From: Bispira polyomma
Taxonomy: Eukaryota
Length of the DNA: 64,000 nucleotides
Direction of reading: 5' to 3'
Assembly (NCBI GenBank): GCA_965649765.1
Contig: OZ287758.1
Span: 42,470,001-42,534,000 of the forward strand
Positions within the stretch are counted from its first letter, which is position 1. Each line of letters starts with the position of its first letter. Below are positions 1,946-63,183 of the stretch, piece after piece. The notes beneath the pieces are model-generated. The model ran no database searches, was not told the DNA's origin, and worked only from the letters and a program-made list of their open reading frames with translations. The position numbers and the translations under genes were made by a program.

Positions 1946-2069
1946 ATATACTATTGAGTTTTTGGATGTGAAAACACTGTTAATTAGTGTCACCTTCAAA
2001 GTACAATTTGCTGTGTCCGGAATATTTATCTCTTATGATGACAAAGGAGAAGAAATATTTCGACAGCCG
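1946..2069 (+). CDS. Mucin-like gene exon (domain D0, middle)
   Basis: tttccag acceptor, gtgagt donor; [41 protein letters not shown]; phase 2 to 0. Confidence 0.7.
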
Positions 2070-5000
2070 GTGAGTTTGAGGGTCTGATTGGTTTTAATAT
2101 CTATTAACACATCTTCAACTGGCTTCAATAAGGATACAAATGGGCTGTCTATTTCTTTGAATAATTATGTTATAATAATATCCCCTGTTAAATAACCGAG
2201 TGGTTAGGGAGTTGGTCTGGTGATCACAAGGTCCCCAGTTTGACTCCTGGTTGAGTAGTTGGTCTCTTGACTGTATGGTAACAGGTTCAAATGCTGGCAA
2301 CGCTATAATGGTTATTAGAGGATAACACACGCAGGCAAGATGTAAACTTGCCATTGCTCACAATAATGGAAAATGGAGCATTTCTGTGAATGGATAGGGC
2401 GCTGTATAAATCTGTTATATTATTTTTGTCATTATAATGAACATTTGGCCATGTATTGGAATCATGATTGATAGTTTATCCATTATAATGCTTCACTTTA
2501 TGTCTGGCATCAATAAGATGTGATAAAAATCCACAATATAATTGAATACCCTTCATTATAAATCTACAAATGTATTATAACAGATAATGATTCAGGTGGA
2601 CACTGGAGGGAGGGGGAGGTACACCGACTACAATGTCAGAAACTGTACATAACAGGGACAGTATTCACAAAAGGGCTAAATCAAGATCGATTTAGATCGA
2701 TTATACCTTAGTGCTAGATTTAGGACAATATCTGTGACTACTGACCCACAAGTATATTAGAAAGTAAATACTGATGTATATAGCAAGGGTAAAATTTGAC
2801 AAAATAACTGGAACAACCAGTTAGTATCGACAATACCTTAATATGTTAGAATCATTTGTATTTCTATTTTACATTTTACATTAAAAAGTCCTTTATTAAT
2901 GTGAGGCATCTGCTGAAGCAAAACAACAGCACCAATTAACCAATCATGTAGTCTAAAAACTATAGCCAGGTCGTAGGGCAAGGTGGGGTGATGTACAGGG
3001 CGATAATTAAGAGGGGTAAGCAAGTGGGTTTTACAGAGGTCTTTCCTCTACACATTACAGTGTACAGATACTTAGGGGGGAAATTGATCCATCTAACTCT
3101 TCAGGTCCAGTCCTTTGTAAATAAGAGAAGTCATTGAAAATTTTTATTCATATGTTCAGTTATTTTGTTGCTGTTATGCTTTCAGATTATTAATCTTGAG
3201 GAGGAAGCAACCAACTTTGTTAACATTGATATATCAATCCCAGAAGCGGCTGCAAAAATAGAACTGATCTTTGCGGGGACCTCAAAAACATTTTCAAGAC
3301 TCAGTGAGGTCCAGATCATTATTTGTGATGGTGAGTAAATATTTACAGGTTATAAACTGTTTTAGATGGTAATCTTGTAAGGTGACTCAGTGAAAACTAA
3401 AGTCTCCGATAAAAGCCAAAATTACCATATAACCACAGTAGTTTTAGCCATCATGCGATCTGATTTGTATACCATGTACACTGAAACTGAAAAAGTATTA
3501 ACTGCTGCTGAAAGTATTTTTGTGTGTGACAATTCTTAAGGAAGAAAGTACATACTCACAATTTTTACATGTACTGTATCACTTTAGAGGCATACTTTAA
3601 GTACATAATGTAAGCAGTATATTATCCAACTTGTATGTTTTTATTTTATAATTTTTTGGTAATAAAGTAGTTTTATATAACCCACACCTTTAAAACTTTA
3701 ATTTCATATGCTCTTTTAAAAGAAAGCAACATTACAGTGTAAATAAATTCATCTCACTAACATGTAGGTTTCCAATTTTGTGCCACAAACATGTACAGTG
3801 AAATATTTAGGCCGGGTTAAGTTTTAGGGTGGCACAATTTAAGTAATACTAATTGTCATCACCAACCTTAATCAGCTATTATGTGTGCTTTAGGTTAAGT
3901 TGTGGTAACTTCAGTAAAACAGTAGTTAAGTAAAGGTAACCATACATTTGGGACCTTACATTTTTACCAAAATATTGGATTATGCTAGGAGATCAATATC
4001 AAAGCAGGTTTTTCAAAATTAGTACGTAAACAGTGTATCTAATAAGTTATTAATACATGTGTCAAGATCAGTCGAGGACATATAATAAATAAAATTATTT
4101 GTGCAATAAATAATTATTTGTGCAGGCTTATAATAAAAGCGTATTTTAAGCGTGTATATAATGTGTCTTTCCAATAAAACTACCATGTTTGTAATGTTGA
4201 AAATAAACAATACTTGTATAGATATGTTTATTGGTGTATGTTCACTTGTTCAGTCCAAAACTTTAACAATTTTACAATATGCAAAACCATTCATGCTCAA
4301 AAAATTATATTTGATTCATTGAAAAACATATTAAAATATGTAAAGCTGTGTTTATTTCCTTAATATTAACCATTTATAGTGTTGAGCTATTTGTTAATCA
4401 ATCGTAAGAATCCCAACTTAAGTCACACCTACACAACTGTTTTTAAGTCACGCCCTTTGCTAAGTCTGAGATTGTGGTATGTTCTTTGTGAATGACTGAT
4501 CCTAAGACAAACATTTTTTTTCAAAAGGTTAAGACAAAAGTGAAAGTGAACAATTACATTTTTTATTTTAAGAGACAGATGAACAATATATTATAGCAGA
4601 TTTATATTTCTTTGTATGTCTATCTACAACAACACCAACTGCTACACCAACAGGTACATCAACACCAACACCCATACCAACACCAACTCCAGCACCTACA
4701 CCCATACCATCACCCATACCAACTCCTACTCCAGCACCCGTACCAACTCCTACTCCAGCACCCGTACCCACTCCTACTCCAGCACCCGTACCCACTCCTA
4801 CTCCAGCACCCATACCGACTCCTACTCCAGCACCCACACCCACCCCAACTCCTGCACCTATTTGCCCTAATAAGACCAATCAAATTGAATTAGATTATGA
4901 TAACCTCAGCCAAGGTTCAGTCCGTCTTTCTGTGTCTCCAGTACAAGCTGAAGATGCACTGGACTCTCCAGTGTCAATGTTTGTTATGAACTCTAGTTTA

Positions 5001-8000
5001 GTGACCATTACTGTCACATTTTCACCACCAACCGACCTGAGCTTCATGATGTTTTCTGTGACAAATATTAGCCTCGTCAAATACGACATTTTTCTACAAA
5101 ACAAAGTTATTGTGATGCCTGAAGATGTAAGTTGTTTCACGAGTATTAAATATTTTAATGGTTTCATCATACATTTATTTTCACTTTATAGACATCATTT
5201 AGAATTTATTACCACTCAATATCAAATAATTTTGTACTTTAGCACAGATGATAAATGAAATTGCCCCCTGTACTGGTAGTTATTGTTTTCTATATTTTTA
5301 GACAGAAATTGGTAATACAGGATCCTTTACCAAGATCACAGTGACTCTAGGTGACAGTGCAAAGAAAGTAGAGTCAGTGAGCATTCATCTGCAACAGGCC
5401 AACCTTGACATAGGCGTGATTAAAGATCTTCTGTTTATTGAGTGTGATGGAGATGATGTGCCACCACGTAAGTACATGGCAGTCTTAGATCTAAAAAATA
5501 TGTCACTGTATTTAAGCATATATATTTGCCAAGTATATCTCAGAAACTAACTACATCACACTGTCAAAATTATGCCTTAATGTATCTATGCATGTCAGAT
5601 ATTAAAATTATCCTTTTTCCCTGAAAAATGTTGGTACATAGCCACCTTACATATCAATAATTGATGGTATTTCAGAGTATGTTTAAAAAATCTATCATAC
5701 TTTCAATATGTATTCTTAATGTATCTATCTGTTTGTATACTGAAATGTAATTCTTCCCTTAGTTCTAAATATGTTACTCTATTTGACAAAATATTTAATA
5801 AACGCTTTGTACTATCAAAGTAGACAAATTATAGCTACTTTATCAAATGACTAAATCATCTTAAACTTCCTAAAATACATTTTATGTACTGAAAGTTTGT
5901 AATCATTAAACAGCGAAAGACTGTCCTGCAGAAGAACTAGCTAGATATGATTTTACTGATTTCCCATCAGTCATTGTGAATGTAAACAATGGTGTGGGGT
6001 CTGCTGAAGACGCTCTGTTAAATTCAATGTCTGGATTACAAATCACAACTGGTAGTGGAGAAAACCAGTTGAATGTGACATTCAATGAACCTCTACTCCT
6101 ATCTGGCCTCAGATTCACTACACAGTTTGTGACCAACATGACCGTGACCCTAATTTCTGGATCTGGTTCAGTATCAAGTAAAGTAAGACCCAAGTGTATT
6201 ATTTACTTTGTTCTTATTTGTTTAATGATGGGTTTTCATTGTTTATCTATGTCTCAAATTTTTCATATACAAACTGAGTATACACCAAAATATAAACAGT
6301 ACAACACTTTTGGAAAAACTTAACTAAATATATTTATTTTTAATTCTGAAAACTCAATTGTCTTTTTTTCAATATCATGAATAATATTTGTCATTAAAAG
6401 ACATCATTTACACATCAATAACTGACTGAAATATTTGTAAATATATATTTCAGATAGAGATTTCAGATGAAAATGTTGCTACATCACACCTTGTGTCAAT
6501 ATCTGCTGAATTTCCCCTGATATCAACAATTACATTTTTATTTGAAGAGACAGATGAAGAATATATTATAGCAGATTTATACTTCTTTGTCTGTGTATCT
6601 ACAACAACACCAACACCCGTACCAACTCCTACTCCAGCACCCATACCAACTCCTACAGCAACAGGCACACCCACACCAGCACCCATACCCACTCCTACTC
6701 CAGCACCCGTACCCACTCCTACTCCAGCACCCATACCGACTCCTACTCCAGCACCCGTACCAACTCCTACTCCAGCACCCACACCCACGCCAATTCCTGC
6801 ACCTATTTGCCCTAATAAGACCAATCAAATTGAATTGGATTATGATAACCTCAGCCAAGGTTCAGTCCATCTTTCTGTGTCTCCAGTACAAGCCGAAGAT
6901 GCACTGGACTCTTCAGTGTCAATGTTTGTCATGAACTCTAGTTTAGTGACCATTACTGTCACATTTTCACCACCAACCGACCTGAGCTTCATAATGTTTT
7001 CTGTGACAAATATTAGCCTCGTCAAATACGACATTTTTCTACAAAACAAAGTTATTGTGACGCCTGAAGATGTAAGTTGTTTCACGAGTATTAAATATTT
7101 TAATGGTTTTATCATACATTTATTTTCACTTTATAGACATCATTTAGAATTTATTACCACTCAATATCAAATAATTTTGTACTTTATCACAAATGATAAA
7201 TGAAATTGCCCCCTGTACTGGTAGTTATTGTTTTCTATATTTTTAGACAGAAATTGGTAATACTGGATCCTTTACCAAGATCACAGTGACTCTAGGCGAC
7301 AGTGTAAAGAAAGTAGAGTCAGTGAGCATTCATCTGCAACAGGCCAACCTTGACATAGGCGTGATTAAAGATCTTCTGTTTATTGAGTGTGATGGAGATG
7401 ATGTGCCACCACGTAAGTACATGGCAGTCTTAGATCTAAAAAATATGTCACTGTATGTAAGCATATATATTTGCCAAGTATATCTCAGAAACTAACTACA
7501 TCACACTGTCAAAATTATGCCTTAATGTACCTATGCATGTCAGATAATAAAATTATCCTTTTTCCCTGAAAAATGTTGGTACACAGCCACCTTACATATC
7601 AATAATTGATGGTATTTCAGAGTATGTTTAAAAAATCTATCATACTTTCAATATGTATTCTTAATGTATCTATCTGTTTGTATACTGAAATGTAATTCTT
7701 CCCTTAGTTCTAAGTATGTTACTCTATTTGACAAAATATTTAATAAACGCTTTGTACTATCAATGTAGACAAATTATAGCTACTTTATCAAATGACTAAA
7801 TCATCTTAAACTTCCTAAAATACATTTTATGTACTGAAAGTTTGTAATCATTAAACAGCGAAAGACTGTCCTGCAGAAGAACTAGCTAGATATGATTTTA
7901 CTGATTTCCCATCGGTCATTGTGAATGTAAACAATGGTGTGGGGTCTGCTGAAGACGCTCTGTTAAATTCAATGTCTGGATTACAAATCACAACTGGTAG

Positions 8001-11000
8001 TGGAGAAAACCAGTTGAATGTTACATTCAATGAACCTCTACTCCTATCTGGCCTCAGATTCACTACACAGTTTGTGACCAACATGACCGTGACCCTAATT
8101 TCTGGATCTGGTTCAGTATCAAGCACAGTAAGACCCAAGTGTATTATTTACTTTGTTCTTATTTGTTTAATAATGGGTTTTCATTGTTTATCTATGTCTC
8201 AAATTTTTCATATACAAACTGAGTATACACCAAAATATAAACAGTACAACACTTTTGGAAAAACTTAACTAAATATATTTATTTTTAATTTTGAAAACTC
8301 AATTGTCTTTTTGTATATCATGAATTATATTTGTCATTAAAAGACATCATTTACACATAAATAACTGACTGAAATATTTGTAAATATATATTTCAGATAG
8401 AGATTTCAGATGAAAATGTTGCGACATCACACCTTGTGTCAATATCTGCTGAATTTCCCCTGATATCAACAATTACATTTTTATTTGAAGAGACAGATGA
8501 ACAATATATTATAGCAGATTTATACTTCTTTGTCTGTGTATCTACAACAACACCAACACCTGTACCAACTCCTACTCCAGCACCTACACCCATACCATCA
8601 CCCGTACCAACTCCTACATCAACAGGCACACCCACACCAGCACCTGTTCCAACTCCTACTCCAGCACCCGTACCTACTCCTACTCCAGCACCCGTACCCA
8701 CTCCTACTCCAGCACCCATACCTACTCCTACTCCCGCACCTACACCCATACCATCACCAGTACCCACCCCTACATCAACAGGCACACCCACACCAGCACC
8801 CGTACCAACTCCTACTCCAGCACCCGTACCCACTCCAACTCCAGCACCCGTACCCACTCCTACTCCCGCACCTACACCCATACCATCACCAGTACCAACC
8901 CCTACATCAACAGGCACACCCACACCAGCACCCGTACCAACTCCTACTCCAGCACCTGTACCCACTCCAACTCCAGCACCTATACCCACTCCTACTCCAG
9001 CACCTACACCCATACCATCACCAGTACCAACCCCTACATCAACAGGCACACCCACACCAGCACCCGTACCAACTCCTACTCCAGCACCCGTACCCACTCC
9101 AACTCCAACACCTATACCCACTCCTACTCCCGCACCTACACCCATACCATCACCAGTACCAACCCCTACATCAACAGGCACACCCACACCAGCACCCGTA
9201 CCAACTCCTACTCCAGCACCTGTACCCACTCCAACTCCAGCACCTATACCCACTCCTACTCCAGCACCTACACCCATACCATCACCAGTACCAACCCCTA
9301 CATCAACAGGCACACCCACACCAGCACCCGTACCAACTCCTACTCCAGCACCCGTACCCACTCCAACTCCAGCACCTGTTCCAACCCCTACTCCAGCACC
9401 TACACCCATACCATCACCTGTACCAACCCCTACATCAACAGGCACACCCACACCAGCACCCGTACCAACTCCTACTCCAGCACCCGTACCCACTCCTACT
9501 CCAGCACCCGTACCCACTCCTACTCCAGCACCCATACCGACTCCTACTCCAGCACCCGTACCAACTCCTACTCCAGCACCCACACCCACGCCAATTCCTG
9601 CACCTATTTGCCCTAATAAGACCAATCAAATTGAATTGGATTATGATAACCTCAGCCAAGGTTCAGTCCATCTTTCTGTGTCTCCAGTACAAGCCGAAGA
9701 TGCACTGGACTCTTCAGTGTCAATGTTTGTCATGAACTCTAGTTTAGTGACCATTACTGTCACATTTTCACCACCAACCGACCTGAGCTTCATAATGTTT
9801 TCTGTGACAAATATTAGCCTCGTCAAATACGACATTTTTCTACAAAACAAAGTTATTGTGACGCCTGAAGATGTAAGTTGTTTCACGAGTATTAAATATT
9901 TTAATGGTTTCATCATACATTTATTTTCACTTTATAGACATCATTTAGAATTTATTACCACTCAATATCAAATAATTTTGTACTTTATCACAGATGATAA
10001 ATGAAATTGCCCCCTGTACTGGTAGTTATTGTTTTCTATATTTTTAGACAGAAATTGGTAATACTGGATCCTTTACCAAGATCACAGTGACTCTAGGCGA
10101 CAGTGCAAAGAAAGTAGAGTCAGTGAGCATTCATCTGCAACAGGCCAACCTTGACATAGGCGTGATTAAAGATCTTCTGTTTATTGAGTGTGATGGAGAT
10201 GATGTGCCACCACGTAAGTACATGGCAGTCTTAGATCTAAAAAATATGACACTGTATTTAAGCATATATATTTGCCAAGTATATCTCAGAAACTAACTAC
10301 ATCACACTGTCAAAATTATGCCTTAATGTACCTATGCATGTCAGATAATAAAATTATCCTTTTTCCCTGAAAAATGTTGGTACACAGCCACCTTACATAT
10401 CAATAATTGATGGTATTTCAGAGTATGTTAAAAAATCTATCATACTTTCAATATGTATTCTTAATGTATCTATCTGTTTGTATACTGAAATGTAATTCTT
10501 CCCTTAGTTCTAAGTATGTTACTCTATTTGACAAAATATTTAATAAACGCTTTGTACTATCAATGTAGACAAATTATAGCTACTTTATCAAATGACTAAA
10601 TCATCTTAAACTTCCTAAAATACATTTTATGTACTGAAAGTTTGTAATCATTAAACAGCGAAAGACTGTCCTGCAGAAGAACTAGCTAGATATGATTTTA
10701 CTGATTTCCCATCGGTCATTGTGAATGTAAACAATGGTGTGGGGTCTGCTGAAGACGCTCTGTTAAATTCAATGTCTGGATTACAAATCACAACTGGTAG
10801 TGGAGAAAACCAGTTGAATGTTACATTCAATGAACCTCTACTCCTATCTGGCCTCAGATTCACTACACAGTTTGTGACCAACATGACCGTGACCCTAATT
10901 TCTGGATCTGGTTCAGTATCAAGCACAGTAAGACCCAAGTGTATTATTTACTTTGTTCTTATTTGTTTAATAATGGGTTTTCATTGTTTATCTATGTCTC

Positions 11001-14000
11001 AAATTTTTCATATACAAACTGAGTATACACCAAAATATAAACAGTACAACACTTTTGGAAAAACTTAACTAAATATATTTATTTTTAATTTTGAAAACTC
11101 AATTGTCTTTTTGTATATCATGAATTATATTTGTCATTAAAAGACATCATTTACACATAAATAACTGACTGAAATATTTGTAAATATATATTTCAGATAG
11201 AGATTTCAGATGAAAATGTTGCGACATCACACCTTGTGTCAATATCTGCTGAATTTCCCCTGATATCAACAATTACATTTTTATTTGAAGAGACAGATGA
11301 ACAATATATTATAGCAGATTTATACTTCTTTGTCTGTGTATCTACAACAACACCAACACCTGTACCAACTCCTACTCCAGCACCTACACCCATACCATCA
11401 CCCGTACCAACTCCTACATCAACAGGCACACCCACACCAGCACCTGTTCCAACTCCTACTCCAGCACCCGTACCTACTCCTACTCCAGCACCCGTACCCA
11501 CTCCTACTCCAGCACCCATACCTACTCCTACTCCCGCACCTACACCCATACCATCACCAGTACCCACCCCTACATCAACAGGCACACCCACACCAGCACC
11601 CGTACCAACTCCTACTCCAGCACCCGTACCCACTCCAACTCCAGCACCCGTACCCACTCCTACTCCCGCACCTACACCCATACCATCACCAGTACCAACC
11701 CCTACATCAACAGGCACACCCACACCAGCACCCGTACCAACTCCTACTCCAGCACCTGTACCCACTCCAACTCCAGCACCTATACCCACTCCTACTCCAG
11801 CACCTACACCCATACCATCACCAGTACCAACCCCTACATCAACAGGCACACCCACACCAGCACCCGTACCAACTCCTACTCCAGCACCCGTACCCACTCC
11901 AACTCCAACACCTATACCCACTCCTACTCCCGCACCTACACCCATACCATCACCAGTACCAACCCCTACATCAACAGGCACACCCACACCAGCACCCGTA
12001 CCAACTCCTACTCCAGCACCTGTACCCACTCCAACTCCAGCACCTATACCCACTCCTACTCCAGCACCTACACCCATACCATCACCAGTACCAACCCCTA
12101 CATCAACAGGCACACCCACACCAGCACCCGTACCAACTCCTACTCCAGCACCCGTACCCACTCCAACTCCAGCACCTGTTCCAACCCCTACTCCAGCACC
12201 TACACCCATACCATCACCTGTACCAACCCCTACATCAACAGGCACACCCACACCAGCACCCGTACCAACTCCTACTCCAGCACCCGTACCCACTCCTACT
12301 CCAGCACCCGTACCCACTCCTACTCCAGCACCCATACCGACTCCTACTCCAGCACCCGTACCAACTCCTACTCCAGCACCCACACCCACGCCAATTCCTG
12401 CACCTATTTGCCCTAATAAGACCAATCAAATTGAATTGGATTATGATAACCTCAGCCAAGGTTCAGTCCATCTTTCTGTGTCTCCAGTACAAGCCGAAGA
12501 TGCACTGGACTCTTCAGTGTCAATGTTTGTCATGAACTCTAGTTTAGTGACCATTACTGTCACATTTTCACCACCAACCGACCTGAGCTTCATAATGTTT
12601 TCTGTGACAAATATTAGCCTCGTCAAATACGACATTTTTCTACAAAACAAAGTTATTGTGACGCCTGAAGATGTAAGTTGTTTCACGAGTATTAAATATT
12701 TTAATGGTTTCATCATACATTTATTTTCACTTTATAGACATCATTTAGAATTTATTACCACTCAATATCAAATAATTTTGTACTTTATCACAGATGATAA
12801 ATGAAATTGCCCCCTGTACTGGTAGTTATTGTTTTCTATATTTTTAGACAGAAATTGGTAATACTGGATCCTTTACCAAGATCACAGTGACTCTAGGCGA
12901 CAGTGCAAAGAAAGTAGAGTCAGTGAGCATTCATCTGCAACAGGCCAACCTTGACATAGGCGTGATTAAAGATCTTCTGTTTATTGAGTGTGATGGAGAT
13001 GATGTGCCACCACGTAAGTACATGGCAGTCTTAGATCTAAAAAATATGACACTGTATTTAAGCATATATATTTGCCAAGTATATCTCAGAAACTAACTAC
13101 ATCACACTGTCAAAATTATGCCTTAATGTACCTATGCATGTCAGATAATAAAATTATCCTTTTTCCCTGAAAAATGTTGGTACACAGCCACCTTACATAT
13201 CAATAATTGATGGTATTTCAGAGTATGTTTAAAAAATCTATCATACTTTCAATATGTATTCTTAATGTATCTATCTGTTTGTATACTGAAATGTAATTCT
13301 TCCCTTAGTTCTAAGTATGTTACTCTATTTGACAAAATATTTAATAAACGCTTTGTACTATCAATGTAGACAAATTATAGCTACTTTATCAAATGACTAA
13401 ATCATCTTAAACTTCCTAAAATACATTTTATGTACTGAAAGTTTGTAATCATTAAACAGCGAAAGACTGTCCTGCAGAAGAACTAGCTAGATATGATTTT
13501 ACTGATTTCCCATCGGTCATTGTGAATGTAAACAATGGTGTGGGGTCTGCTGAAGACGCTCTGTTAAATTCAATGTCTGGATTACAAATCACAACTGGTA
13601 GTGGAGAAAACCAGTTGAATGTTACATTCAATGAACCTCTACTCCTATCTGGCCTCAGATTCACTACACAGTTTGTGACCAACATGACCGTGACCCTAAT
13701 TTCTGGATCTGGTTCAGTATCAAGCACAGTAAGACCCAAGTGTATTATTTACTTTGTTCTTATTTGTTTAATAATGGGTTTTCATTGTTTATCTATGTCT
13801 CAAATTTTTCATATACAAACTGAGTATACACCAAAATATAAACAGTACAACACTTTTGGAAAAACTTAACTAAATATATTTATTTTTAATTTTGAAAACT
13901 CAATTGTCTTTTTGTATATCATGAATTATATTTGTCATTAAAAGACATCATTTACACATAAATAACTGACTGAAATATTTGTAAATATATATTTCAGATA

Positions 14001-17000: not shown

Positions 17001-20000
17001 CTCCAGCACCTACACCCATACCATCACCAGTACCAACCCCTACATCAACAGGCACACCCACACCAGCACCTGTACCAACTCCTACTCCAGCACCCGTACC
17101 AACTCCTACTCCAGCACCCGTACCAACTCCTACTCCAGCACCTGTACCAATCCCTACTCCAGCACCTACACCCATACCATCACCTGTGCCAACTCCTACT
17201 CCTGTACCCGTACCAACTCCTACTCCAGCACCCGTACCCACTCCTACTCCACTCATACCATCACCCGTGCCAACTCCTACATCAACAGGCACGCCCACAC
17301 CAGCACCCGTACCAACTCCTACTCCAGCACCCGTACCCACTCCAACTCCAGCACCTGTTCCAACCCCTACTCCAGCACCTACACCCATACCATCACCTGT
17401 ACCAACCCCTACATCAACAGGCACACCCACACCAGCACCCGTACCAACTCCTACTCCAGCACCCGTACCAACTCCTACTCCAGCACCCGTACCAACTCCT
17501 ACTCCAGCACCTGTACCAATCCCTACTCCAGCACCTACACCCATACCATCACCTGTGCCAACTCCTACTCCTGCACCCGTACCAACTCCTACTCCAGCAC
17601 CCGTACCCACTCCTACTCCACTCATACCATCACCCGTGCCAACTCCTACATCAACAGGCACGCCCACACCAGCACCTGTACCAACTCCTACTCCAGCACC
17701 CGTACCTAATCCTACTCCAGCACCCGTACCCACTCCTACTCCAGCACCTGTACCAACCCCTACTCCAGCACCTACACCCATACCATCACCTGTACCAACC
17801 CCTACTCCAGCACCTACACCCATACCATCACCTGTACCAACCCCTACTCCAGCACCTACACCCATACCATCACCTATACCAACTCCTACTCCAGCACCCG
17901 TACCCACTCCTACTCCAGCACCCATACCCACTCCTACTCCAGCACCTACACCCATACCATCACCTGTGCCAACTCCTACTCCTGTACCCGTACCAACTCC
18001 TACTCCAGCACCCGTACCCACTCCTACTCCACTCATACCATCACCCGTGCCAACTCCTACATCAACAGGCACGCCCACACCAGCACCCGTACCAACTCCT
18101 ACTCCAGCACCCGTACCCACTCCAACTCCAGCACCTGTTCCAACCCCTACTCCAGCACCTACACCCATACCATCACCTGTACCAACCCCTACATCAACAG
18201 GCACACCCACACCAGCACCCGTACCAACTCCTACTCCAGCACCCGTACCAACTCCTACTCCAGCACCCGTACCAACTCCTACTCCAGCACCTGTACCAAT
18301 CCCTACTCCAGCACCTACACCCATACCATCACCTGTGCCAACTCCTACTCCTGCACCCGTACCAACTCCTACTCCAGCACCCGTACCCACTCCTACTCCA
18401 CTCATACCATCACCCGTGCCAACTCCTACATCAACAGGCACGCCCACACCAGCACCTGTACCAACTCCTACTCCAGCACCCGTACCTAATCCTACTCCAG
18501 CACCCGTACCCACTCCTACTCCAGCACCTGTACCAACCCCTACTCCAGCACCTACACCCATACCATCACCTGTACCAACCCCTACTCCAGCACCTACACC
18601 CATACCATCACCTGTACCAACCCCTACTCCAGCACCTACACCCATACCATCACCTATACCAACTCCTACTCCAGCACCCGTACCCACTCCTACTCCAGCA
18701 CCCATACCCACTCCTACTCCAGCACCTACACCCATACCATCACCAGTACCAACCCCTACATCAACAGGCACACCCACACCAGCACCCGTACCAACTCCTA
18801 CTCCAGCACCCGTACCCACTCCTACTCCAGCACCTGTTCCAACCCCTACTCCAGCACCTACACCCATACCATCACCTGTACCAACCCCTACATCAACAGG
18901 CACACCCACACCAGCACCCGTACCAACTCCTACTCCAGCACCCATACCAACTCCTACTCCAGCACCTGTACCAATCCCTACTCCAGCACCTACACCCATA
19001 CCATCACCTGTGCCAACTCCTACTCCTGCACCCGTACCAACTCCTACTCCAGCACCCGTACCCACTCCTACTCCACTCATACCATCACCCGTGCCAACTC
19101 CTACATCAACAGGCACGCCCACACCAGCACCCATACCAACTCCTACTCCAGCACCCGTACCCACTCCAACTCCAGCACCTGTTCCAACCCCTACTCCAGC
19201 ACCTACACCCATACCATCACCTGTACCAACCCCTACTCCAGCACCTACACCCATACCATCACCTGTACCAACCCCTACTCCAGCACCTACACCCATACCA
19301 TCACCTGTTCCAACTCCTACTCCAGCTCCTACACCCATACCATCACCTGTACCAACCCCCACTCCAGCACCTGCACCAATACCATCACCTATACCAACTC
19401 CTACACCAACACCCACACCCACACCTACACCCACACCCACACCTACACCAACACCTACACCCACACCAACACCCACACCTACACCTACACCAACACCTAC
19501 ACCTACACCTACACCCACTCCAACACCCACACCAACCCCCACACCAACACCTACACCAACACCCACACCTACACCCACCCCAACACCCACCCCTACACCC
19601 ATCCCAACACCAGTACCAACTCCTACATCAACAGGTACACCCACACCAACACCTGTACCCACTCCTACTCCAGAACCAACAACCACACTTGGTGGTCCAG
19701 GTATATTTATATTTGTTCTTATGTCATCGATATATGAAATATGATATTAATGTATAAACTTGTTATGTATGTATGTATATATATATATACAATTAAACAT
19801 TCCTTTTAACAACTTTAAACTAACTGTAATATGTTGAACATGAAACTGCATGTGATTTGTTACTAATTTCTAGACACCTATTTATCTACAGGTAGGGGGT
19901 GCCCGATAGGATTTATTCGAGAACGTTTAGATTTTGATATGAGAACAGCATTCACTACGCTCAAAGTCTTCGATGCTATAGATGTACTTGTGGATGCTTC

Positions 20001-23000
20001 AGCTGCCCTTGAGGGGTCGTTCAGTGCCTTTTCAACCATAAATGGTATGGATAACCATAATAAGAATAATTAGTATTTATAGTCACATGTGTTATGTAAT
20101 CAACTTGTAAAGATCTTGAACAATTACATTTTTTGTCGGTTGAATGAACTGGCCATTTTAATCCACATCTTGTGTTTTCATCTTAGTTTATAAATATTCC
20201 TGAATTTAGATGAACATAAATAATTATGTGATGCAAGACTAGTCCTTTAATTTTTCTTTCTGTAATATGTTATAAACTTTTAGGGAATGTTTATACCAGA
20301 GATATATTCATTCACTTTATTCCAGTTTTACACCAATAATTAAAGGGCATTTGACCTTTGACATAGTCCTGACATATCTAACACCAATTATTTTTTACCT
20401 GACGTGTGTAAAAGACTTAACTATTTAGCGAAAACAACTGTTGAATATGTAAAGGTAATAAACATATTGAAAAGAAAAATCTCAAATGGTATTGAGTTTT
20501 CTTCCTTTGTGCGTCACTCGTGTAACTTTCATTTGGTGTCCTCTCTATCAGTGTGTCAACTTCAACTGCAGAATAAATAAGTCACATCATAATTTCCTAT
20601 TATTCTTACAACAGGTATTACAGGCACACTGAGTCCCAATGTAAAGGTGGCATCAATCGGATTTTCAATCAAGAGTGCTGCTGACGTTGATGTAGTGATT
20701 GCATTAGGTCTATTGTCCAAAGATGTGAAAGTGAGTATTAAACATTAACACAACTAGTTACATGTGAGTTGTATTATAATTAGTATGGTACAGAAAACTG
20801 ACTTAAGGAATAACACACAACAAAGCATGGTATATGATAAGTTTTACCATGATTGGAGGCGTAGTACGGCAAGGCAATGCTCCTACATTTGCTTCATTCC
20901 TGGTGTATATATTGCAAAATCACGTTATTGATGGAATTATCATGTAATGCCCTTTAATTATTGGTGGAAAAAAATTCTGTGTACTAAAATGTGATTTTGT
21001 AGGGTGTTACAAGTTTTAAGCTGCATGACATTAATTATTAGCAGCCAAAGGGCTGTTAGGCCCGAGGACTGTTAATGATTAATGAAGTAGTGCTAAAAAC
21101 TGTAACGCCTGTACAAAATCACATTATTACTATTATTATGAAATAAAATTAAAAGCTGAAAACTACTGTAAATCCTGATATTTTACTGTTTATTATATAA
21201 ACAATAAACAACTAACAAATTAACTAATCCTAACAAACTAAACAAGTCTTCTCATTGATCCAGCAAATTTAAAAACTGATTTTACAGAAATGGCGTATAT
21301 GAACCGTTAGACCGAATAATCTGTCCTTATTTAGCGAGATTCCTTGATGTTATATTGATGGCAGACTCACGAAATGGGTCAGCGGTCTTGTTGTAGGCCT
21401 GGATTTTACTATATTTTAGAACCAATCAGAATAATCGGCGACACAAGCTTGTTATGTTAGTATGTGAAAAAAAACATATGAATCGACTTCAATAATGAAA
21501 TGATAGAATATTTTAGTAGCCTGTTCATTATATGTGTGCTTTGTGAACTTGCACTGTTTGACACAAGACTAGCTCTTAAATCTTACTTATGTAATATTTT
21601 TATAACTTTGAGGAATGTGTTACCTGAATCTGAGGATAATTACATTACAATTAGGGTTAGTTCCCTCACAATTTTACCTGATATATATATATACTACATT
21701 GTATTCCTATTATATCGTCTCAACATCTATTCATAAAAATTGCAGAAAATGTGAATGATGTGTCATTTTGCGTTTTTACGTGCCACTCTGCTATAAATAT
21801 AATGTTTATCTCCAGACACATTGGAGATGTTTCCTATTATTTCAATAAAAACATAAGGTTTTTTGGGCCGAAAAATTCTAAACAAAGTCATAATTTACAG
21901 CAACTGGGGAGAAAAAAATAAAATTCTGTGGGGTGAAATTTTTTTCAGTACTTTTTATTGAATTTTTCCTTCCCAAAACAGGCTTTTCCATTGAAAACAA
22001 TAGGCAAATAACTGAAAATATTTACCTTATTCAAAGAGGTTTTAAAAGAGCCTGGTGTGACATAGTGTTTTTTTTTATATATTTTTGTTCAACATGTTAA
22101 TGAACCTTTTCATAAAAATTTTTTTTTGAAAATCTGTGGTGTAAAAAAAATGGTAGCGAACAACCTTAATCAGGAAACTCCGGAATTTCATACATTACTG
22201 TGTTCGAGATATTTCATTGCAATATTATCCCAAAACCCAAATCATATGCAACTGTTAGCATAAATAAAAATACAAACTGGTAACAAAATAAGAGCTTTAT
22301 GACAGATGCCTCATTGGTGTAATGGTAACACACTTACCACCCTGTTTGTCGTGGACTAGAGCCATGGCATGTATGTGTGAGAAAATCTAAAAATAGACGT
22401 GGTTAAGCCCGGTGGTTTGCAGATCTGATTCACTTTACTAGTGAATGGCCTCCATGTTCAACTAAAACAACATTATAACGTCTGTAAACAACTTAAATAA
22501 CTTGGCTATGTTGTCAACTAATAAACAGGCTTGCTACTGCTAGGATTCGATTCTGGGTTGTCATGGATCTTGAAATTAATAGTCCAGTACACTGACAGTT
22601 GAGCTAAAAGGGGGAACCCCTGAAGTCCAATGTGTTTAATGCACAGATAATACACGTCTCTAGATGTCTCTGTTTTCATATGCTGTATATGTTATATCCT
22701 TATTTGTTTCTTCTTAGCTTACTGGTCTGAGCTCTGACTCGTATACACCCTTCACCATCCCAATCTCCTCATCTGATTCAAATTCTAACGGGTTTGATAT
22801 TCTTGGGAATCTGATGATAAAAGACCTCTATGTCGATGTTTGTGTACCTTCTGGGCCCCCACCAGTAGGAAGCACCCCTTGTAAGTAACATTTGCAGTGG
22901 TCAGACTGTATTTACTGTAAATGTCAGGACAATGTTAACTACTGGTTTTAAGAAAGCTCTTATTTAGTAGTACAAGATATTGGTTGCTTTCCCATTCAAT

Positions 23001-26000
23001 GCTTAACAAGATCACATACTCTTTGACATTTATAATTATGGTTCAAGTCTAGAGAGATAATTTAAAGTTTTACTCCTAATCATGATATCTAAGTAAATAC
23101 GGTGCAGAAAGACTTTTTTTATGGATAATAATTTTCAGCTACTTTAGGTAATGAGTCGGGAGAGTGAAAATTAATTCCCTCTTTTACAAAAAATAGCCAA
23201 TAGTTAAAATTAATTATAGTGATTTTTTTTCTTCAAAAATTGTAAGTTAATGAAAAATTTGATTATAATAATTTAAAGTGTATCAATTTAATTTTCAGCT
23301 CCACTATGTCCAAGTAACCTACAGGATATTGTTATAGTGGCAGCTGACGACATTGCTAATGGTGGTTCACGGGTTGAAGCTGTGTTCAACAATGGATCAG
23401 AGACATCTGCCAAAGATATCTGGTTTTTGTCCGGTAGCCAGATAGAAACCTCATCTGACATATCAATACTCATTAAATTTAGTTTCAATGAAGTCATAGC
23501 TGATATTAAAATGGTCCTGGAAGGGTTTTCCGATGTTCAGCTAAGTTTCTTTAATGATGACATTGGTCAGATTGACGTTGCTAGCGTAAGTATTGGTCTA
23601 TTATATATGAATCAATGTTTTTTGTAAAAGCTTTGCACGGTTTGTTAGTTTACTTTTTGGTACAGATAAATATTCTCAAAACATGTCATAAAGTCGGTAG
23701 TCATAAATAAAAATTTGATGATTTTCTAAAAAAAAAAACATTTAAAAATAAATTGCTGTTGTAGAAGGCATTGTAATCACTATTTTTTGATGATGTAACA
23801 AATTTGTCTTGCAGTTTGAAATAAATTGTATGTACAATGCCTTCAATCAGTAGTGTCCTTCCTTTCTATTTGTTTACATGGGATTCTCTAGGCCTCTGTT
23901 GCCTAATGGTTAGAGTGTCAGACTTTGGATCTCAGGTATCTTGAAAGCCAGGGTTCGATCCTTGCCTGGAGACTGTACCCTTAGACAAGGTGCTTTACAC
24001 AAAGTTGTCCCTCTCTACCCAGGTGTAGAAATGGGTAGCTGGTTGCTAATAGATGTTAGTGTTTGTGTGCCGTATGTGACAGCATGGCTAGTATGCTCCC
24101 TTAGGGAGCTGAGACTGAACAATTGGTTGACAAGTGAAAGAACCCAGGCTGGGGGTGCAAACTGTAAAGTCGACTGAGACCTCAATAACGGTGATATCAG
24201 ACTATAAAGCTGACATTTACATTTTGCATTTACATTACTGTTAACTAAATAAACTTTAGGTAAAATAATGGTCGGGAGTGTGCATTATAGTTTGTCTGAA
24301 CAAATGAGTTGGACTTAACAAATCAGCTTTCAGTATAACTATGTCATCCTGTAGGATACGTGAGAGTCATGCTCGATCAGTTTTCAAAGCCCACTCTCTG
24401 ACTCTAATTAATTGACTATCTCAAGGAAGCCAAGCATGATCACCATCATCATGAATGTCTATGGTGTCTCACCAAATCACCACTTCACAGGAAGTGGTAC
24501 CAAACCATCATCCACCAAGTCATCATGCCTTTTGTTAATACAATACGGTATTATGTGTCGATGAACTCTTTATAAAGTGCAGTCAAAGGGACTTTCGAGA
24601 GTGTGCGATTTATGTGTTTCCATCGGTATTTTTGTATTGCTATGTCTAATTCCAGGAAACTACAGATGATGCGTCAATTCAATCAATTGTGGTTTTTGAC
24701 TCTAGTGTCATACCTCCAGTACCTATAAAGGATATAGTCATACAGCTTACCAGCACTGAAATTGCTCTGAACAAGATTAAGAACCTGTTGATAACTGTGT
24801 GCGGTGAGACACCAACAACAACTGTGGCTCCAGGTATACATATTGAACTGTTTGTAATTTACATATAATTTTATACTCCGTATCTCCCTGCATCATTTAG
24901 GGACTCAACATGCTAGTTTATTTTGTTATTGACTGCACAAGTAGAACAAAACCAGGACTAGTAACCGATATTCCCCTATGAGTAGACATAGGTTTGAGGA
25001 TGCCGATTAATCAATTTCCTTTGGCCTTCAACTAGGTACAGAACTTAGGCACCAGGCTAGGTTTAAACTCAGGTCTTCTGTAATACTAAGCATTAGCAGA
25101 TCCAGAATCGGAAGTGGATCCAGTTCCATAATCTATTTTGAACATAAATGTTACCATTTGGTTGTTAGACATGTGTTTGCTGCAATAAAAATTTTTTTTA
25201 AAAGATAAGGGGATAGTTCTAACCACCCGAGCTCACCCCTTGGTCCGCTTATGCTAAGTTGAGAATGTTTCCCATTAAATCATTGTGGTATATAAAGCGG
25301 GTACTTGCAACTATTAATATTGATGTATATATATGGCTCTAATTCAATATATTGAGTGTTGTTGGCATCATTAAGTTATGCATAAATGTGTTTGTGGCCT
25401 TATTGGCCTATTGCTCAGACTGTCTGGTTTCAGATCTGATAGTCCAGATTTTATCCTTGCTGCTGGCCTAGAGATTGTACCCTCCTTAGGCAAGGTACTT
25501 CACAGAAAGTTGTCCATGTCCACTCAGGTGTATAAATGGGTACCTGGATGCCAATGGATGTTAGTTTTGTTTGATATATGTGGCAGCATAGCTAGTATGC
25601 TTCCTGAATGAGCTCAAAGTGAACACTTGATTGATAAGTGGAATAACCCAGGCTGGGGGTGTAAATTGTAAAGTCTGATAAGACCTCAATGAAGGTAATA
25701 TCAGACTTTAAACCTACACATATTTACATAAATACTGTACAACAGATAATGTAAAAATATTATACCCACCAGAATGTTATAATTTGTCAACAAAGTTAAA
25801 TTATTTTTTCATACTATTTATTTGTCCAACAGATATTTTCTGATATAATTTAGAAATTAATTTCTGCCTTTGATGTGTATGTATCACATTTAAAGTAATA
25901 CAGTAGGACCCCTATTATCTAAACATGCTAGGACATCATGTCAATTTGAGACAGTAAAAACGTGTTTGCAAATTTAAATTCCGATAATTGTAGTTCGGAT

Positions 26001-28922
26001 AAGAGTGGTTTACACAAAGGTTGTGCACAAAATTACAGAATCTATAATACAGGAACATGTTATTTTTTCATATTTTCACAAATATTGTGAATACTTTAAT
26101 AATATTCTATGATTTTCTTCCTTTATAAAAAGTAGATCAGAATAAAACTTGTACATACGTTTACAAACGATTCCTTAAAACTAAAATTGACCAATTTTTT
26201 TATTTTCAGATATTTGTGTCGATGACTTCATTAGCATTCATTTCGAAAATCAGATGGGTATAAAACTCTCAATTGATGGACCCTTTTCCGGTAACAACCC
26301 AAAACAAATATTGAGAAGATCACCCCAGGACCCACCAATATTGCTCAGCAATTCTGATGGAACTGCTATGCTTATCGCAGAATTTGATGAACCAAAGGAC
26401 ATTGTGAGCTTAGATTTGACAACACACCTTGCTACATATATAGAAGTGAAAATGTTTAACTCTGGTGGTACCGAACTCTTCAGCTTAAAAACTGTAAGTA
26501 AAAGTACTGTTGTAGGTACATTGTTAAGTCATCACCAAGAAGAACCAGCCTAACCAACTTGGTGGCAATTGGATATGACAAACTCATCACCACTGAGACA
26601 TAATTACTATTATGAAATTATTTTTTGCAGTAAAGTTGAATTCTACAAATTGCATGCCACAATTTAGATATGTAACTACACTATGGTGCAGAAATATAAA
26701 CAGAATTTATGCAATAAGCTAAAATAAATTTAATATTGCATTTTACTTGCCGAAAGTCGCTGGTTTACCTCTAGCTCTGAGACTGCCCATTGTGATACGA
26801 CCTTTACCATTTGTTGAAAACGACCCAAAATAAATATCAAATCAATTAAATCTTTCGTAAACTATTTTCATCTGCAACTCAATACAAGGTTCTGTATTTA
26901 CACATTAAAGATGTTTCCTATACATCGTTATGTAATTTGTTTGTTAGATTGGTTCCAAGTTCGGTTGTGCTTGGTTTGCTTAGTTAACAAGTTATGCATA
27001 TGCGTTTAACAAGAAGAACATTCCCTGAATGAGCGATTTACAGTTTCCTTATAATAGTTTAGTGTGACAATTACGGAACATTATGCATTCATACACAGGA
27101 CCCTATTAATCCACTACAAACCTCCACAACCGAAATAGATGCCACTTTGGTTCGAGGCGTTACAAGGCTGGAGTTTAGATTTGGCTATGATTCTAATGAA
27201 CTGCAGGTGTCAAGGCTCAGAATTGTCATTTGTGAGGAGGAAGGTAAGCCAAATAGTAATACACCCTATAATAAAGATATATACACTGTGGATAAAATGA
27301 TAGGTTCACCCCCTAATATTGATTTTGTAATTAATGTATTGAACCATTAAGAGAATGTGTTTTATAATAATAAAGCAAGAATGTATTTTATTAAATCTCA
27401 TTTTAATTTTATTAAAAGCCATTTTATTAGTTTGTTAAAGTAATTGTGCCAAAGTCTCAAGCCTTCACAATAGGTGCCATACTTAGAATGATGCCTTGAG
27501 CAGAGGGTCTGTAATATTATTGTAGTAAATGTAACCACTGTTCCTGTCAAGCTTGTTATAGTTTATTAAATTTAAAGATCACTTTTATTGATGGAGTTCA
27601 GACAAAGCAATTAAATTACTAATAATATGTTATTATTACATTGTTGGATGTACTTTACATTTCTAATACTAGAATATTATTTACATTTCTAAAGAAGAAT
27701 AACGAGACCAAATTTGTTAATTATTTAGCATTATTAAACAAAGTCTTGATACTATTTTTAAAGAAAAAGTAAATTTGATCTGTGGTAAAAAATTACAATA
27801 ACTGTATCTGCAAGTCCATACCCAGTTAATGTTTTTTTGTTTTTTTTTGTACATATACTCTGAAAAAAATATAAATGTTATCTAAATATTTAATAAATAA
27901 TACATGTCTATTAAAGTCCATATTTAGTAAATGCTAAATTTATTCTGTACATTTTGAAACTATGTTGCTATGTGGACCAGTTTATACATTTATACGGTAA
28001 GTAAAACCTTTTACCTATATTGTTTGTCTGGAGAGAAACAGAATCAGACGTGAATGTTGGCGAAAATGATGTGAATGAATAAAAGTGAATGGAATATGTG
28101 GATTACTCTGTGTTATATGTCAGCGTGTTTTACTTTATTAGGTAGTTTTAATCTGTCTGTGTATCTGCTGGTGAATGTTGTTAGATGTATGGCTTATGGT
28201 TAGATGTATGGCTTATCATGTGTAGACCTGTAAAGGTTACTGTTCAAACAGATTCTTTGTTGGTATACAAAAATATTGCTATAAAGTTTTAAATAGTTGT
28301 CAATGCATCACTACTATTATTAGTGATTTAACCAGAAAACTATGTTATTTGTGTATAGTGAATTTGTTGTTTAATTAGCAGCAGGTTACTCATCTGTCAT
28401 CTAGATACACACAGTCACACCTTGCTGATGGAAGCTGCGATCGTCTGTGAACACTTTTGGTATGAATACTAATGGCCACCCGATTGATTAACTTAAATTA
28501 GATCAGTCCGGGTTTCACGTTGCTTAAAACATGTCTTGTATGTGATCACATCACACAAGTGACAGTTCACTGGCAAAGGAAGTTAAAACTCGGTAGTTTG
28601 TCAAGGTTTTCTTCTCTGCAAACCACCAGCTTTCAGCAAGTGTACTGCTAACCTTACCCCATGCGTTAGCTGATACTTGAACCCACCCACACCAGTGTGG
28701 AATCACTGTACCACCAACACCCCACATCCATTAAAAGATTAAGGAAGATTACTTATCTTGCTTTTCATCCGTCTCTTGCTTATTTTGTCATGGTAACAAA
28801 TAAATTTAATTTGAAAACGAATAAGTATGCCCACCACCTTGGTTGGGAGTTTTCTGTTCATTTACTGAATAACATGTATCACTAACCAAATTTTATTTGC
28901 AGGTTTGTCACGACAGTTGTAA
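1946..28922 (+). CDS. Giant mucin-like secreted glycoprotein, 5'-partial, ~4,100 aa in window: Cys-bounded discoidin/galactose-binding-like domains alternating with Pro-Thr tracts
   Basis: Manual model: join(1946-2069,3186-3330,4573-5126,5302-5467,5914-6182,6454-7071,7247-7412,7859-8127,8397-9872,10048-10213,10659-10927,11197-12672,12848-13013,13460-13728,13998-15209,15385-15550,15997-16265,16535-19700,19892-20044,20615-20730,22718-22880,23299-23585,24656-24833,26210-26493,27099-27243,28903-28922). All junctions are AG/GT, phases match throughout and there is no internal stop. The 4573 acceptor and the last exon are the least certain. The first visible exon starts in phase 2, so the N-terminus is outside the window. 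Confidence 0.8.
2193..2425 (+). mobile_element. tRNA-derived SINE (family 1)
   Basis: A-box taaccgagtgg, tRNA-like ttggtctggtgatcacaaggtccccagtttgactcc, LINE-like tail gggcgctgtataaatctgttatattatt; related copy at ~30737. Confidence 0.6.
2655..2748. mobile_element. Small MITE (PIF/Harbinger-like TIRs)
   Basis: Imperfect TIRs gggacagtattcacaaa ... tctgtgactactgaccc. Confidence 0.45.
2905..3040 (-). mobile_element. L2/CR1-group LINE 3' tail fragment
   Basis: Reverse complement resembles 31770-31835 (ccttgccctacgacctggctat vs ccttccttatgacctggctat). Confidence 0.5.
3186..3330 (+). CDS. Mucin-like gene exon (domain D0, C-terminal half)
   Basis: ctttcag / gtgagt; [48 protein letters not shown]; phase 0 to 1. 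Confidence 0.8.
4573..5126 (+). CDS. Mucin-like gene exon A1 (short PT tract + first half of domain A)
   Basis: Donor gtaagt at 5127; the acceptor is uncertain (several phase-1 AGs between 4572 and 4599); [18 protein letters not shown]-(PT)78[10 protein letters not shown]...VIVMPED. Confidence 0.65.
5302..5467 (+). CDS. Exon B1 (second half of domain A)
   Basis: ttttag / gtaagt; [55 protein letters not shown]; phase 0 to 1. Confidence 0.85.
5914..6182 (+). CDS. Exon C1 (first half of domain B)
   Basis: aaacag / gtaaga; [26 protein letters not shown]...[38 protein letters not shown]; phase 1 to 0. Confidence 0.85.
6454..7071 (+). CDS. Exon A2 (domain B end + 68-aa PT tract + domain A start)
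   Basis: tttcag / gtaagt; [20 protein letters not shown]...FFVCVS-PT-ICPNKT...TPED; 206 codons. Confidence 0.85.
7247..7412 (+). CDS. Exon B2
   Basis: Near-identical copy of B1 with the same splice sites. Confidence 0.85.
7859..8127 (+). CDS. Exon C2
   Basis: Near-identical copy of C1. Confidence 0.85.
8397..9872 (+). CDS. Exon A3 (354-aa PT tract)
   Basis: Same splice sites as A2; 492 codons. Confidence 0.85.
10048..10213 (+). CDS. Exon B3
   Basis: Copy of B1. Confidence 0.85.
10659..10927 (+). CDS. Exon C3
   Basis: Copy of C1. Confidence 0.85.
11197..12672 (+). CDS. Exon A4 (354-aa PT tract)
   Basis: Translation identical to A3, offset 2800 bp. Confidence 0.85.
12848..13013 (+). CDS. 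Exon B4
   Basis: Copy of B1. Confidence 0.85.
13460..13728 (+). CDS. Exon C4
   Basis: Copy of C1. Confidence 0.85.
13998..15209 (+). CDS. Exon A5 (266-aa PT tract)
   Basis: As A3 but 264 bp (88 aa) shorter. Confidence 0.85.
15385..15550 (+). CDS. Exon B5
   Basis: Copy of B1. Confidence 0.85.
15997..16265 (+). CDS. Exon C5
   Basis: Copy of C1. Confidence 0.85.
16535..19700 (+). CDS. Exon A6 (domain B end + ~1,000-aa PT mucin tract)
   Basis: tttcag acceptor; ends EPTTTLGGP with cag/gtatat donor; phase 0 to 1; covered by the 1056-aa ORF in the track. Confidence 0.85.
16682..19687 (+). repeat. Coding minisatellite (24-bp PTPTPAPV unit, higher-order repeats, terminal (PT)n tract)
   Basis: ccaactcctactccagcacccgta units; 17161-17940 is repeated at 17941-18720; pure PT dipeptide run at ~19393-19600. 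Shorter tracts at 4626-4859, 6601-6804, 8544-9605, 11344-12405 and 14145-14942. Confidence 0.97.
19892..20044 (+). CDS. Mucin-like gene exon (unique domain D1, part 1)
   Basis: tctacag / gtatgg; [51 protein letters not shown]; phase 1 to 1. Confidence 0.75.
20615..20730 (+). CDS. Mucin-like gene exon (D1, part 2)
   Basis: caacag / gtgagt; [39 protein letters not shown]; phase 1 to 0. Confidence 0.75.
20988..21126. repeat. ~140-bp imperfect palindrome (non-autonomous DNA element remnant)
   Basis: aatgtgattttgtagggtgttacaagttttaagc pairs with gctaaaaactgtaacgcctgtacaaaatcacatt; core cagccaaagggctgttaggcccgaggactg. Confidence 0.7.
22718..22880 (+). CDS. Mucin-like gene exon (D1, part 3)
   Basis: ttcttag / gtaagt; [54 protein letters not shown]; phase 0 to 1. 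Confidence 0.8.
23299..23585 (+). CDS. Mucin-like gene exon (D2, first half)
   Basis: ttttcag / gtaagt; [17 protein letters not shown]...[40 protein letters not shown]; phase 1 to 0. Confidence 0.8.
23891..24237 (+). mobile_element. tRNA-derived SINE with CORE-like central domain (family 2)
   Basis: A-box tgcctaatggttagag, B-box ggttcgatcc, CORE-like cccttagacaaggtgctttac...ctacccaggtgtagaaatgggtag, (ACATTT)n tail. Confidence 0.75.
24656..24833 (+). CDS. Mucin-like gene exon (D2, second half)
   Basis: ttccag / gtatac (alternative phase-1 donor gtgaga at 24804); [17 protein letters not shown]...[21 protein letters not shown]. Confidence 0.75.
25395..25730 (+). mobile_element. Second, older copy of SINE family 2
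   Basis: Aligns with 23891-24237 (ccttaggcaaggtacttcac, aaatgggtacc, acccaggctgggggtg, gacctcaat...atcagact). Confidence 0.75.
26210..26493 (+). CDS. Mucin-like gene exon (D3, first half)
   Basis: ttttcag / gtaagt; [17 protein letters not shown]...[41 protein letters not shown]; phase 1 to 0. Confidence 0.8.
27099..27243 (+). CDS. Mucin-like gene exon (D3, second half)
   Basis: cacag / gtaagc; [48 protein letters not shown]; phase 0 to 1. Confidence 0.8.
28903..28922 (+). CDS. Putative terminal coding exon (GLSRQL*)
   Basis: Branch-like actaac followed by ttttatttgcag acceptor; phase 1; stop TAA at 28920-28922; AATAAA motifs at ~29624-29633. Confidence 0.45.
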
Positions 28923-39975: not shown

Positions 39976-40469
39976 GTGGAATAGTGTCTTTGAGAACGCA
40001 TATAAGTCTATTGCAGACAAAGGAACATCAGTGGTATTTCCGGTGTGCACCCCGTGTGAAAACGTAGCACAAAGTGACAAAAGCCAAGGAACAATATATA
40101 TATGTACAAAACTAACCCCTTGACAGAGCACACAAAGGAGTGACAAAAAGGAAAGCAATCATATTGGTGTACTAATGACCCAATGGCATAGCACAGCAAA
40201 AAGTAACAAAAGCAAAGGAACCATATTGGTACATCAGCTACATCTACTAATACCCGGTTTTGGATGGATAATGGTGTTTTAGGGGCAATGAAAGACTAGT
40301 CATGCAGGAGATCGATAACCGGTGCATTATTAGATTGTACTTTTATTATATGTAACATTAATACTGAAAAATGTCATCTGTTGTCAAGATTCCAAGTCAG
40401 TTTAGAAACAATCCATTGATAGAAAAATAAAATGTTTCAAATTATCAGATTTTTTTTACTCAAAAGGTG

Positions 40470-40620
40470 AGTTGAGGTTTGATAGTGCAGTGGTAACACA
40501 ATCGCATGTCATCTCTGCCACCAAGGGTTCAAATCTTGGCTCTGAGTGTACGTAGCAAAGTTGGGAGTAGATTTGCTGAAAGCTGGCGGTTTTAGAACAA
40601 AAAATATTTGACCTGTTTAG
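40470..40620 (+). mobile_element. SINE family 4 copy
   Basis: tagtgcagtggtaacaca...gggttcaaatc...ggagtagatttgctgaaagctggcggttt. Confidence 0.6.
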
Positions 40621-40947
40621 ATTTCCTCTGCTAGTGAACAACCTGTCGTGATACGGCACAAAACATGTTGAAAGGAATAACAAACCTAATGCCCTGGTCA
40701 CACCTAAATGAGTTAATGTCCCACAATCTAGCAGAGCAATATAGACTGGAAACATGGTAGTTTTGTGTTGAAGTAACATCATTTTCATCAAGGTGGAGTC
40801 GATTGTGATGTTTTGTGACGATGTTGGTGCTTTTACACACGGAGCGGGGCCAAAAATCGAACACTTTGCTAGTACGTTATCACTACCTACTACTACATAG
40901 AGCATAGTACTGCTACTTACTGCTGCGTTTTGCTGTGTTATGCTACT

Positions 40948-41422
40948 TAAAGCCTGGTCACACCTACATGTGCTGGAGCTACGTGTGTGTGACGTTTTTA
41001 ACCGGTTTGAAACGTAGTATATGGTAATGCCAATATGACAATCCCTGGTGCATTCGTTCTGTGACATTGCCTAACGGATGCCATCATTCCGGAAACATGT
41101 CGTTCTACGATGAATACTGACACTTGGAGACGATATCACTACCTACTGCTACATTATGCTATATTATGCTACTGATACAGGCGAGTGGACATGTCCTTAA
41201 GAAATGAAAAGCTCTGCCACAATTATTTCAAACAGTTAAAAGTCATCATGGCACTAGCTAAACGGAGACATTTCCGGAACGATATCATCCGTTAACCAAC
41301 GTCATGGGACAAACACAGCAGGGATCCTCACTTTTGCATTACATTCTACTACGGTTATACTAGGTTTCAAAACAGTTCAAAGCACCACAAACACATAGCT
41401 CCAGCATGTGTAGGTGTGTTAA
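40948..41422. mobile_element. Foldback-type MITE with ~150-bp imperfect inverted arms
   Basis: 40958-41108 pairs with 41255-41420 (e.g. cacacctacatgtgctggagcta / tagctccagcatgtgtaggtgtg; taacggatgccatcattccggaaa / tttccggaacgatatcatccgtta). Confidence 0.8.
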
Positions 41423-63177: not shown

Positions 63178-63183
63178 TTTCAG

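Follow-up and report, generated by a model that had tools for sequence, protein, structure and literature searches.

Lang et al. (2016, PMC4948705) describe the F5_F8 domain as a hallmark of mucin-like proteins in lophotrochozoans; discoidin beads as such therefore have precedents among invertebrate mucins. The lophotrochozoan gel-forming mucins and those of the hemolectin type are very large secreted proteins with F5/8C-fold domains inside or beside their Pro/Thr/Ser-rich (PTS) tracts. Small disulfide-closed domains also break the PTS rods of MUC2 and MUC5, where CysD carries intramolecular disulfides; in MUC2, CysD dimers form weak network contacts (PMC3195396). Here we analyzed 64,000 nucleotides of the forward strand (C11:42,470,001-42,534,000, hereafter the window) from the 1.035-Gb genome of Bispira polyomma. 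The window covers all but the first fifth of a conserved gene. This gene encodes a secreted mucus-type protein of ~5,000 residues, which is built from Cys-bounded domains (beads) and Pro-Thr (PT) rods. We consider it somewhat probable that this protein is a secreted mucin with discoidin-type beads, the rods and beads of which join a mucus or extracellular coat non-covalently.

Positions 1946-28922 contain 26 exons, all with AG acceptors and GT donors and with agreeing phases (12,292 nt, ~4,097 codons). Exons and junction codons are free of stops until 28920. A preliminary description of this DNA, whose quoted motifs were all found at their positions, had proposed the layout D0-[PT-A-B]x5-PT-D1-D2-D3-stop. 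Its order and open junctions stood, with 1,007 aa for the last PT rod; D0, by contrast, is incomplete in the window and has its first exon upstream. The PT rods contain 44-47% Pro and 27-31% Thr. For sequence libraries and motif scans the exons were searched singly. The model comprises the following features, identities referring to the ortholog described below.

L003:9538-9694, upstream of the window: first exon of bead D0
1946-2069, + strand: second exon of D0, phase 2 to 0, 37-59% identical
3186-3330, + strand: third exon of D0 with the closing Cys at its end, matched in the ortholog
4573-5126, + strand: first PT rod (~80 aa) fused to the first exon of bead A; acceptor uncertain, 4573 to 4693
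4860-16678, + strand: five tandem A-B cassettes (exons A1, A2, B1, B2 and introns) with PT rods of 69, 355, 355 and 267 aa between them
5302-5467, + strand: second exon of bead A, unit 1; copies at 7247, 10048, 12848 and 15385
5914-6182, + strand: first exon of bead B, unit 1; copies at 7859, 10659, 13460 and 15997
6454-7071, + strand: exon B2-PT-A1; copies at 8397-9872, 11197-12672 and 13998-15209
16535-19700, + strand: final B2 and long PT rod, ~1,007 aa, 47% Pro, 27% Thr
19892-20044, 20615-20730 and 22718-22880, + strand: three exons of bead D1, 52-77% identical
23299-23585 and 24656-24833, + strand: two exons of bead D2, with orthologs in two other samples
26210-26493 and 27099-27243, + strand: two exons of bead D3, the first of which was structure-modelled
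28903-28922, + strand: predicted last coding exon of 20 nt (GLSRQL-stop), placed by phase and a branch-point-like motif only; modest acceptor

The gene starts 36 kb before the window with an exon (L006:4181-4271) that supplies the ATG and encodes a hydrophobic signal peptide. Three units come next. Each opens with two Cys-rich exons, continues with three D0 exons and a PT exon and closes with a short linker exon; the third of them extends into the window. The whole product comprises ~5,070 aa and 16 beads, and its predicted layout is signal peptide - [12-Cys Ly6-like module - bead D0 - PT]x3 - [A - B - PT]x5 - D1 - D2 - D3. The Cys-rich module contains 12 Cys, counting one from the preceding exon, in a spacing that we take to resemble the Ly6/uPAR (LU) pattern. 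It differs from the three-finger domains of that type in its 12 Cys, in a CxxC which replaces CC and in the lack of a terminal CN; neither a Pfam nor a PDB sequence match was obtained for it.

The preliminary description had seen no VWD, CysD, SEA or transmembrane segment and had recommended an inspection of the upstream DNA for a signal peptide and VWD domains. The signal peptide was found, and the absences hold for the whole gene back to it. Among the 114 VWD candidates of the genome search none lies on C11, and no N-terminal VWD-C8-TIL assembly is present, all exons from the start codon on being Ly6-like, bead or PT. The exon-by-exon Pfam scan gave no SEA match. No exon contains a membrane helix, the highest 19-residue hydropathy (1.74) being located in a bead strand, and a transmembrane anchor was rejected. 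A C-terminal cystine knot is missing too, as the model stops six residues past D3, and AATAAA/ATTAAA signals lie past the predicted last exon at 29624, 29707 and 29937. If the model were wrong at one end, the product could be anchored in the membrane or belong to a longer VWD/cystine-knot mucin. The last exon, with its modest acceptor and no counterpart in the ortholog, and other VWD-plus-bead loci in the genome speak for this reading. However, the signal-peptide exon with its start codon is conserved, C11 is free of VWD matches, and no conserved coding segment was detected past D3 when the downstream part of the window was compared with 8 kb of the ortholog. Such an error is very improbable.

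All six bead types are 131-145 aa long and contain exactly two Cys, one per end, in agreement with the six Cys-bounded types of ~140 aa claimed before; these two Cys are invariant in alignments. The net charge per bead is -5 to -15, with 0-1 Trp and 0-2 His. The structure model of the D3 first exon corresponds to the N-terminal two-thirds of a discoidin-type jelly roll and is colinear with the galactose-binding-domain-like superfamily over these two-thirds, at 5-16% identity. Together with the structural matches, this model supports the discoidin/F5-8C-type jelly-roll fold suggested earlier. A new fold was rejected. We read all 16 beads as trimmed jelly rolls of the F5/8C (discoidin) type, acidic and poor in Trp.

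Sequence searches were largely silent. Pfam found nothing over the cut-off on 18 single bead and Cys-rich exons and the signal exon, PF00754 had no match at the locus in the genome scan, and PDB sequence searches as well as Foldseek with the D3 exon model were blank. A word search yielded no candidate with the D3 first exon and only two known fragments with a 24-row bead profile. The best hit of a feature-based atlas search with the D3 first exon (0.86) is a lead only. Bacterial and repeat matches of the large protein search (P0006, P0007 and P0012) were set aside as sums of weak similarities to Ig/PKD repeats.

The best structural matches of the beads include CBM32, CBM47/F-lectin and a chitosan-binding discoidin module. 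The beads could consequently be true carbohydrate-binding modules with a new site, forming a multivalent lectin-mucin that, like insect intestinal mucins, catches microbes or is anchored to the polysaccharide matrix of a chitin/chitosan tube, a cuticle or the gut lining. Their acidity and the separate conservation of at least 12 distinct bead sequences in the cluster, as for distinct specificities, would fit this proposal. On the other hand, none of the 46 bead exons contains the F5/8C signatures W-x-P, LQVDL and TQG, and a pattern search for the F-lectin His-Arg-Asp sugar site and the CBM32 DG-x-W calcium/galactose motif was negative in the same 46 exons. Moreover, the scarcity of Trp and His tells against it, and the non-lectin DOC and IFT25 domains score as high as lectins in structural comparison. 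The lectin-like activity proposed in the preliminary description is unsupported, and we regard a lectin-mucin as unlikely. Jelly-roll topology is common to the whole superfamily (F5/8C, CBM32, CBM47/F-type lectin, DOC/APC10, IFT25); the lectin and Ca-site motifs are what the beads lack.

A first-exon bead profile matched the mucin-2-like protein of Mytilus californianus (XP_052090877.1) and SCO-spondin-like proteins of M. galloprovincialis (P0001, P0017-P0019). In these, degenerate discoidin beads of ~133 aa, each closed by Cys, follow one another in tandem with PTS linkers in between. They differ by repeating one bead type and by their TSP1/TIL/VWC domains and cystine-knot-like tail; the Bispira protein has six bead types, Pro-Thr rods and no such tail. 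The Mytilus proteins are not orthologs. Faint Pfam labels on them (PelX_Ig, Halo_Hfq-like, DUF8186) are unrelated noise. Other matches to the bead profile are located at C3:40.37-40.71 Mb (- strand), at C10:12.78, 12.96 and 32.68 Mb and at C13:4.85 and 15.73 Mb, given here as coordinates only; same-strand VWD matches are located upstream of those on C3.

The bead family, earlier called unrecognised, is thus not new. Lophotrochozoan mucins are already known to carry F5/8C domains (PMC4948705), of which the beads are a degenerate version, and the locus represents neither a new fold nor a new kind of system. Compared with the gel-forming mucins of that group it lacks VWD-C8-TIL, CysD, VWC and cystine knot, its beads fall below Pfam detection, and Ly6-like modules occupy its N-terminus. 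A signal peptide and a PTS-rich repeat region are present as in gel-forming mucins. Since it lacks VWD and cystine knot, the protein should not be filed as one; it would work like a mucin and, judging from the Mytilus and C3 loci, probably goes back to the central part of a gel-forming one. A literature search turned up no mucin described with this layout, which is weak evidence.

In another species an orthologous locus lies on a contig of 727 kb (ENA ERZ22147071). It contains a signal exon with ATG, three Ly6-like/D0 units, two A-B cassettes, a long rod, D1, D2 and D3. Every tested exon is kept in order and splice phase while the introns are unrelated; thus, the locus is not due to chance. 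Over 915 codons the two genes share 58% identity with a dN of 0.33 and a dS of ~1.96 (near saturation), a ratio of ~0.17. This comparison is strong evidence that the gene is real, and a retrotransposon or simple-repeat origin of the frames was rejected. D2 and D3 exons were found in two further samples. In the ortholog an intron separates the PT rod from the first A exon (L018:9370-10020), whereas both form a single exon in the window (6454-7071 etc.); an intron has been lost or gained.

The Ly6-like exons are conserved best (70-83% versus 37-77% for beads). The beads may accordingly be a largely inert legacy of a gel-forming mucin's F5/8C region, acting as protease-resistant spacers or folding units, with any specific binding residing in the three N-terminal Ly6-like modules. 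The loss of signature residues from the beads points in the same direction, as do the A-B cassette number, which is five here and two in the ortholog, and the N-glycosylation sequons. Six of these occur per A-B pair as listed in the preliminary description, none is kept in the ortholog, and their importance was rejected. Against the spacer reading, the bead types stand in fixed order with dN/dS well below 1, and three different terminal beads are kept at 52-77% identity. It appears distinctly unlikely.

The five A-B cassettes are 98.3-100% identical as DNA, introns included. A single indel is the sole difference over 2.8 kb between cassettes 3 and 4 (8397-13997), which indicates either a very recent duplication or an assembly duplication. 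Cassettes are near-identical inside each species and share only ~43-57% protein identity between species; we infer from this repeated homogenisation or re-duplication. The first PT exon offers in-frame acceptors at 4573, 4579, 4597, 4600, 4654 and 4693. Positions 4549-4620 are a remnant half of a bead-B second exon (homology from 4549) that encodes IADLYFFVC. Such a remnant also precedes the PT exon of the upstream D0 units (L005:7735-7810, L003:2075-2150), the L003 copy being frameshifted, and is missing before the PT exon in the ortholog. An in-frame acceptor follows it in all three D0 units (4654 in the window). The remnant is probably intronic, in which case the only unpaired Cys disappears.

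The near-identity of cassettes 3 and 4 and the frameshifted remnant could also mean that the locus is decaying or partly mis-assembled, with extra cassettes and a broken exon in upstream unit 2. The chance of this is almost negligible, as the acceptors past the frameshift, the purifying selection and independent DNA contigs all argue against it. Three sequence runs matching the locus are DNA contigs, in which the 3' exons were matched without change; the run search gave no RNA run covering the locus and no spliced reads.

For the favored mucin with non-covalently joined beads the following mechanism is proposed. If the gene is expressed, the PT tracts would form extended O-glycosylated rods, and each bead would be closed by one end-to-end disulfide. 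Disulfide polymers would not be expected because VWD, cystine knot and spare conserved Cys are absent. Once secreted, presumably into mucus or an extracellular coat, the molecules may form a network via many weak bead-bead or bead-matrix contacts, as CysD does in MUC2. This is a working analogy only: the bead is a different domain with 2 Cys instead of 10 and without WxxW, and its self-association is only proposed. Mesh spacing would be set by rod length and cassette number.

Upstream, at 42.32-42.39 Mb (L017-L010), the same kinds of bead and Cys-rich exons recur and form at least one more paralogous gene, which has ~12 additional bead copies, PT rods of up to ~800 aa and three Cys-rich modules. 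The gene described here is thus the last of a tandem cluster; the upstream paralogous gene is also conserved in the second species. LTR-, LINE- and DIRS-type retrotransposon frames occur within the cluster (L008, L009, L014). High-copy interspersed repeats occupy introns at 23894-24208, 25511-25700 and 28424-28650, one of them with a tRNA-like GGTTCGATCC box. Elsewhere in the window, a 204-codon frame with 12 Cys and no Pfam match lies at 40459-41070 (- strand). A 1,676-codon open frame at 50626-55656 (+ strand), Ser/Asp/Glu-rich and without Pfam match, probably belongs to a separate gene as one giant exon. It has an RVxF-type motif (RKVKFAD) near its start, as in PP1-docking subunits, and a 75-bp coding repeat at 54707-55025. 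A 147-bp tandem repeat (4.3 copies) is found at 56304-56932, and broken DIRS/tyrosine-recombinase-type retrotransposon frames extend over 58790-64000 (+ strand), with a weak RVT_1 match at 62196-63074. Two erythrocruorin-linker genes were noted at C7:48.56 Mb; they agree with an annelid as the source, though they are no decisive sign of one.

The locus adds a VWD-less, Ly6-like-capped mucin layout that could be followed in two species from the start codon through to the end and to which VWD- and Pfam-based surveys are blind. It also reveals a cryptic discoidin branch common to Bispira and mussels. As a tentative and rather doubtful extension, such proteins might constitute a separate class of invertebrate secreted mucins that dropped VWD/cystine-knot polymerisation and form a gel or coat only via degenerate discoidin bead arrays and Ly6-like caps, with rapid changes in the number of cassettes and the length of rods tuning the mesh size. 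If the beads cross-link, they would provide a second, non-covalent route to mucus assembly.
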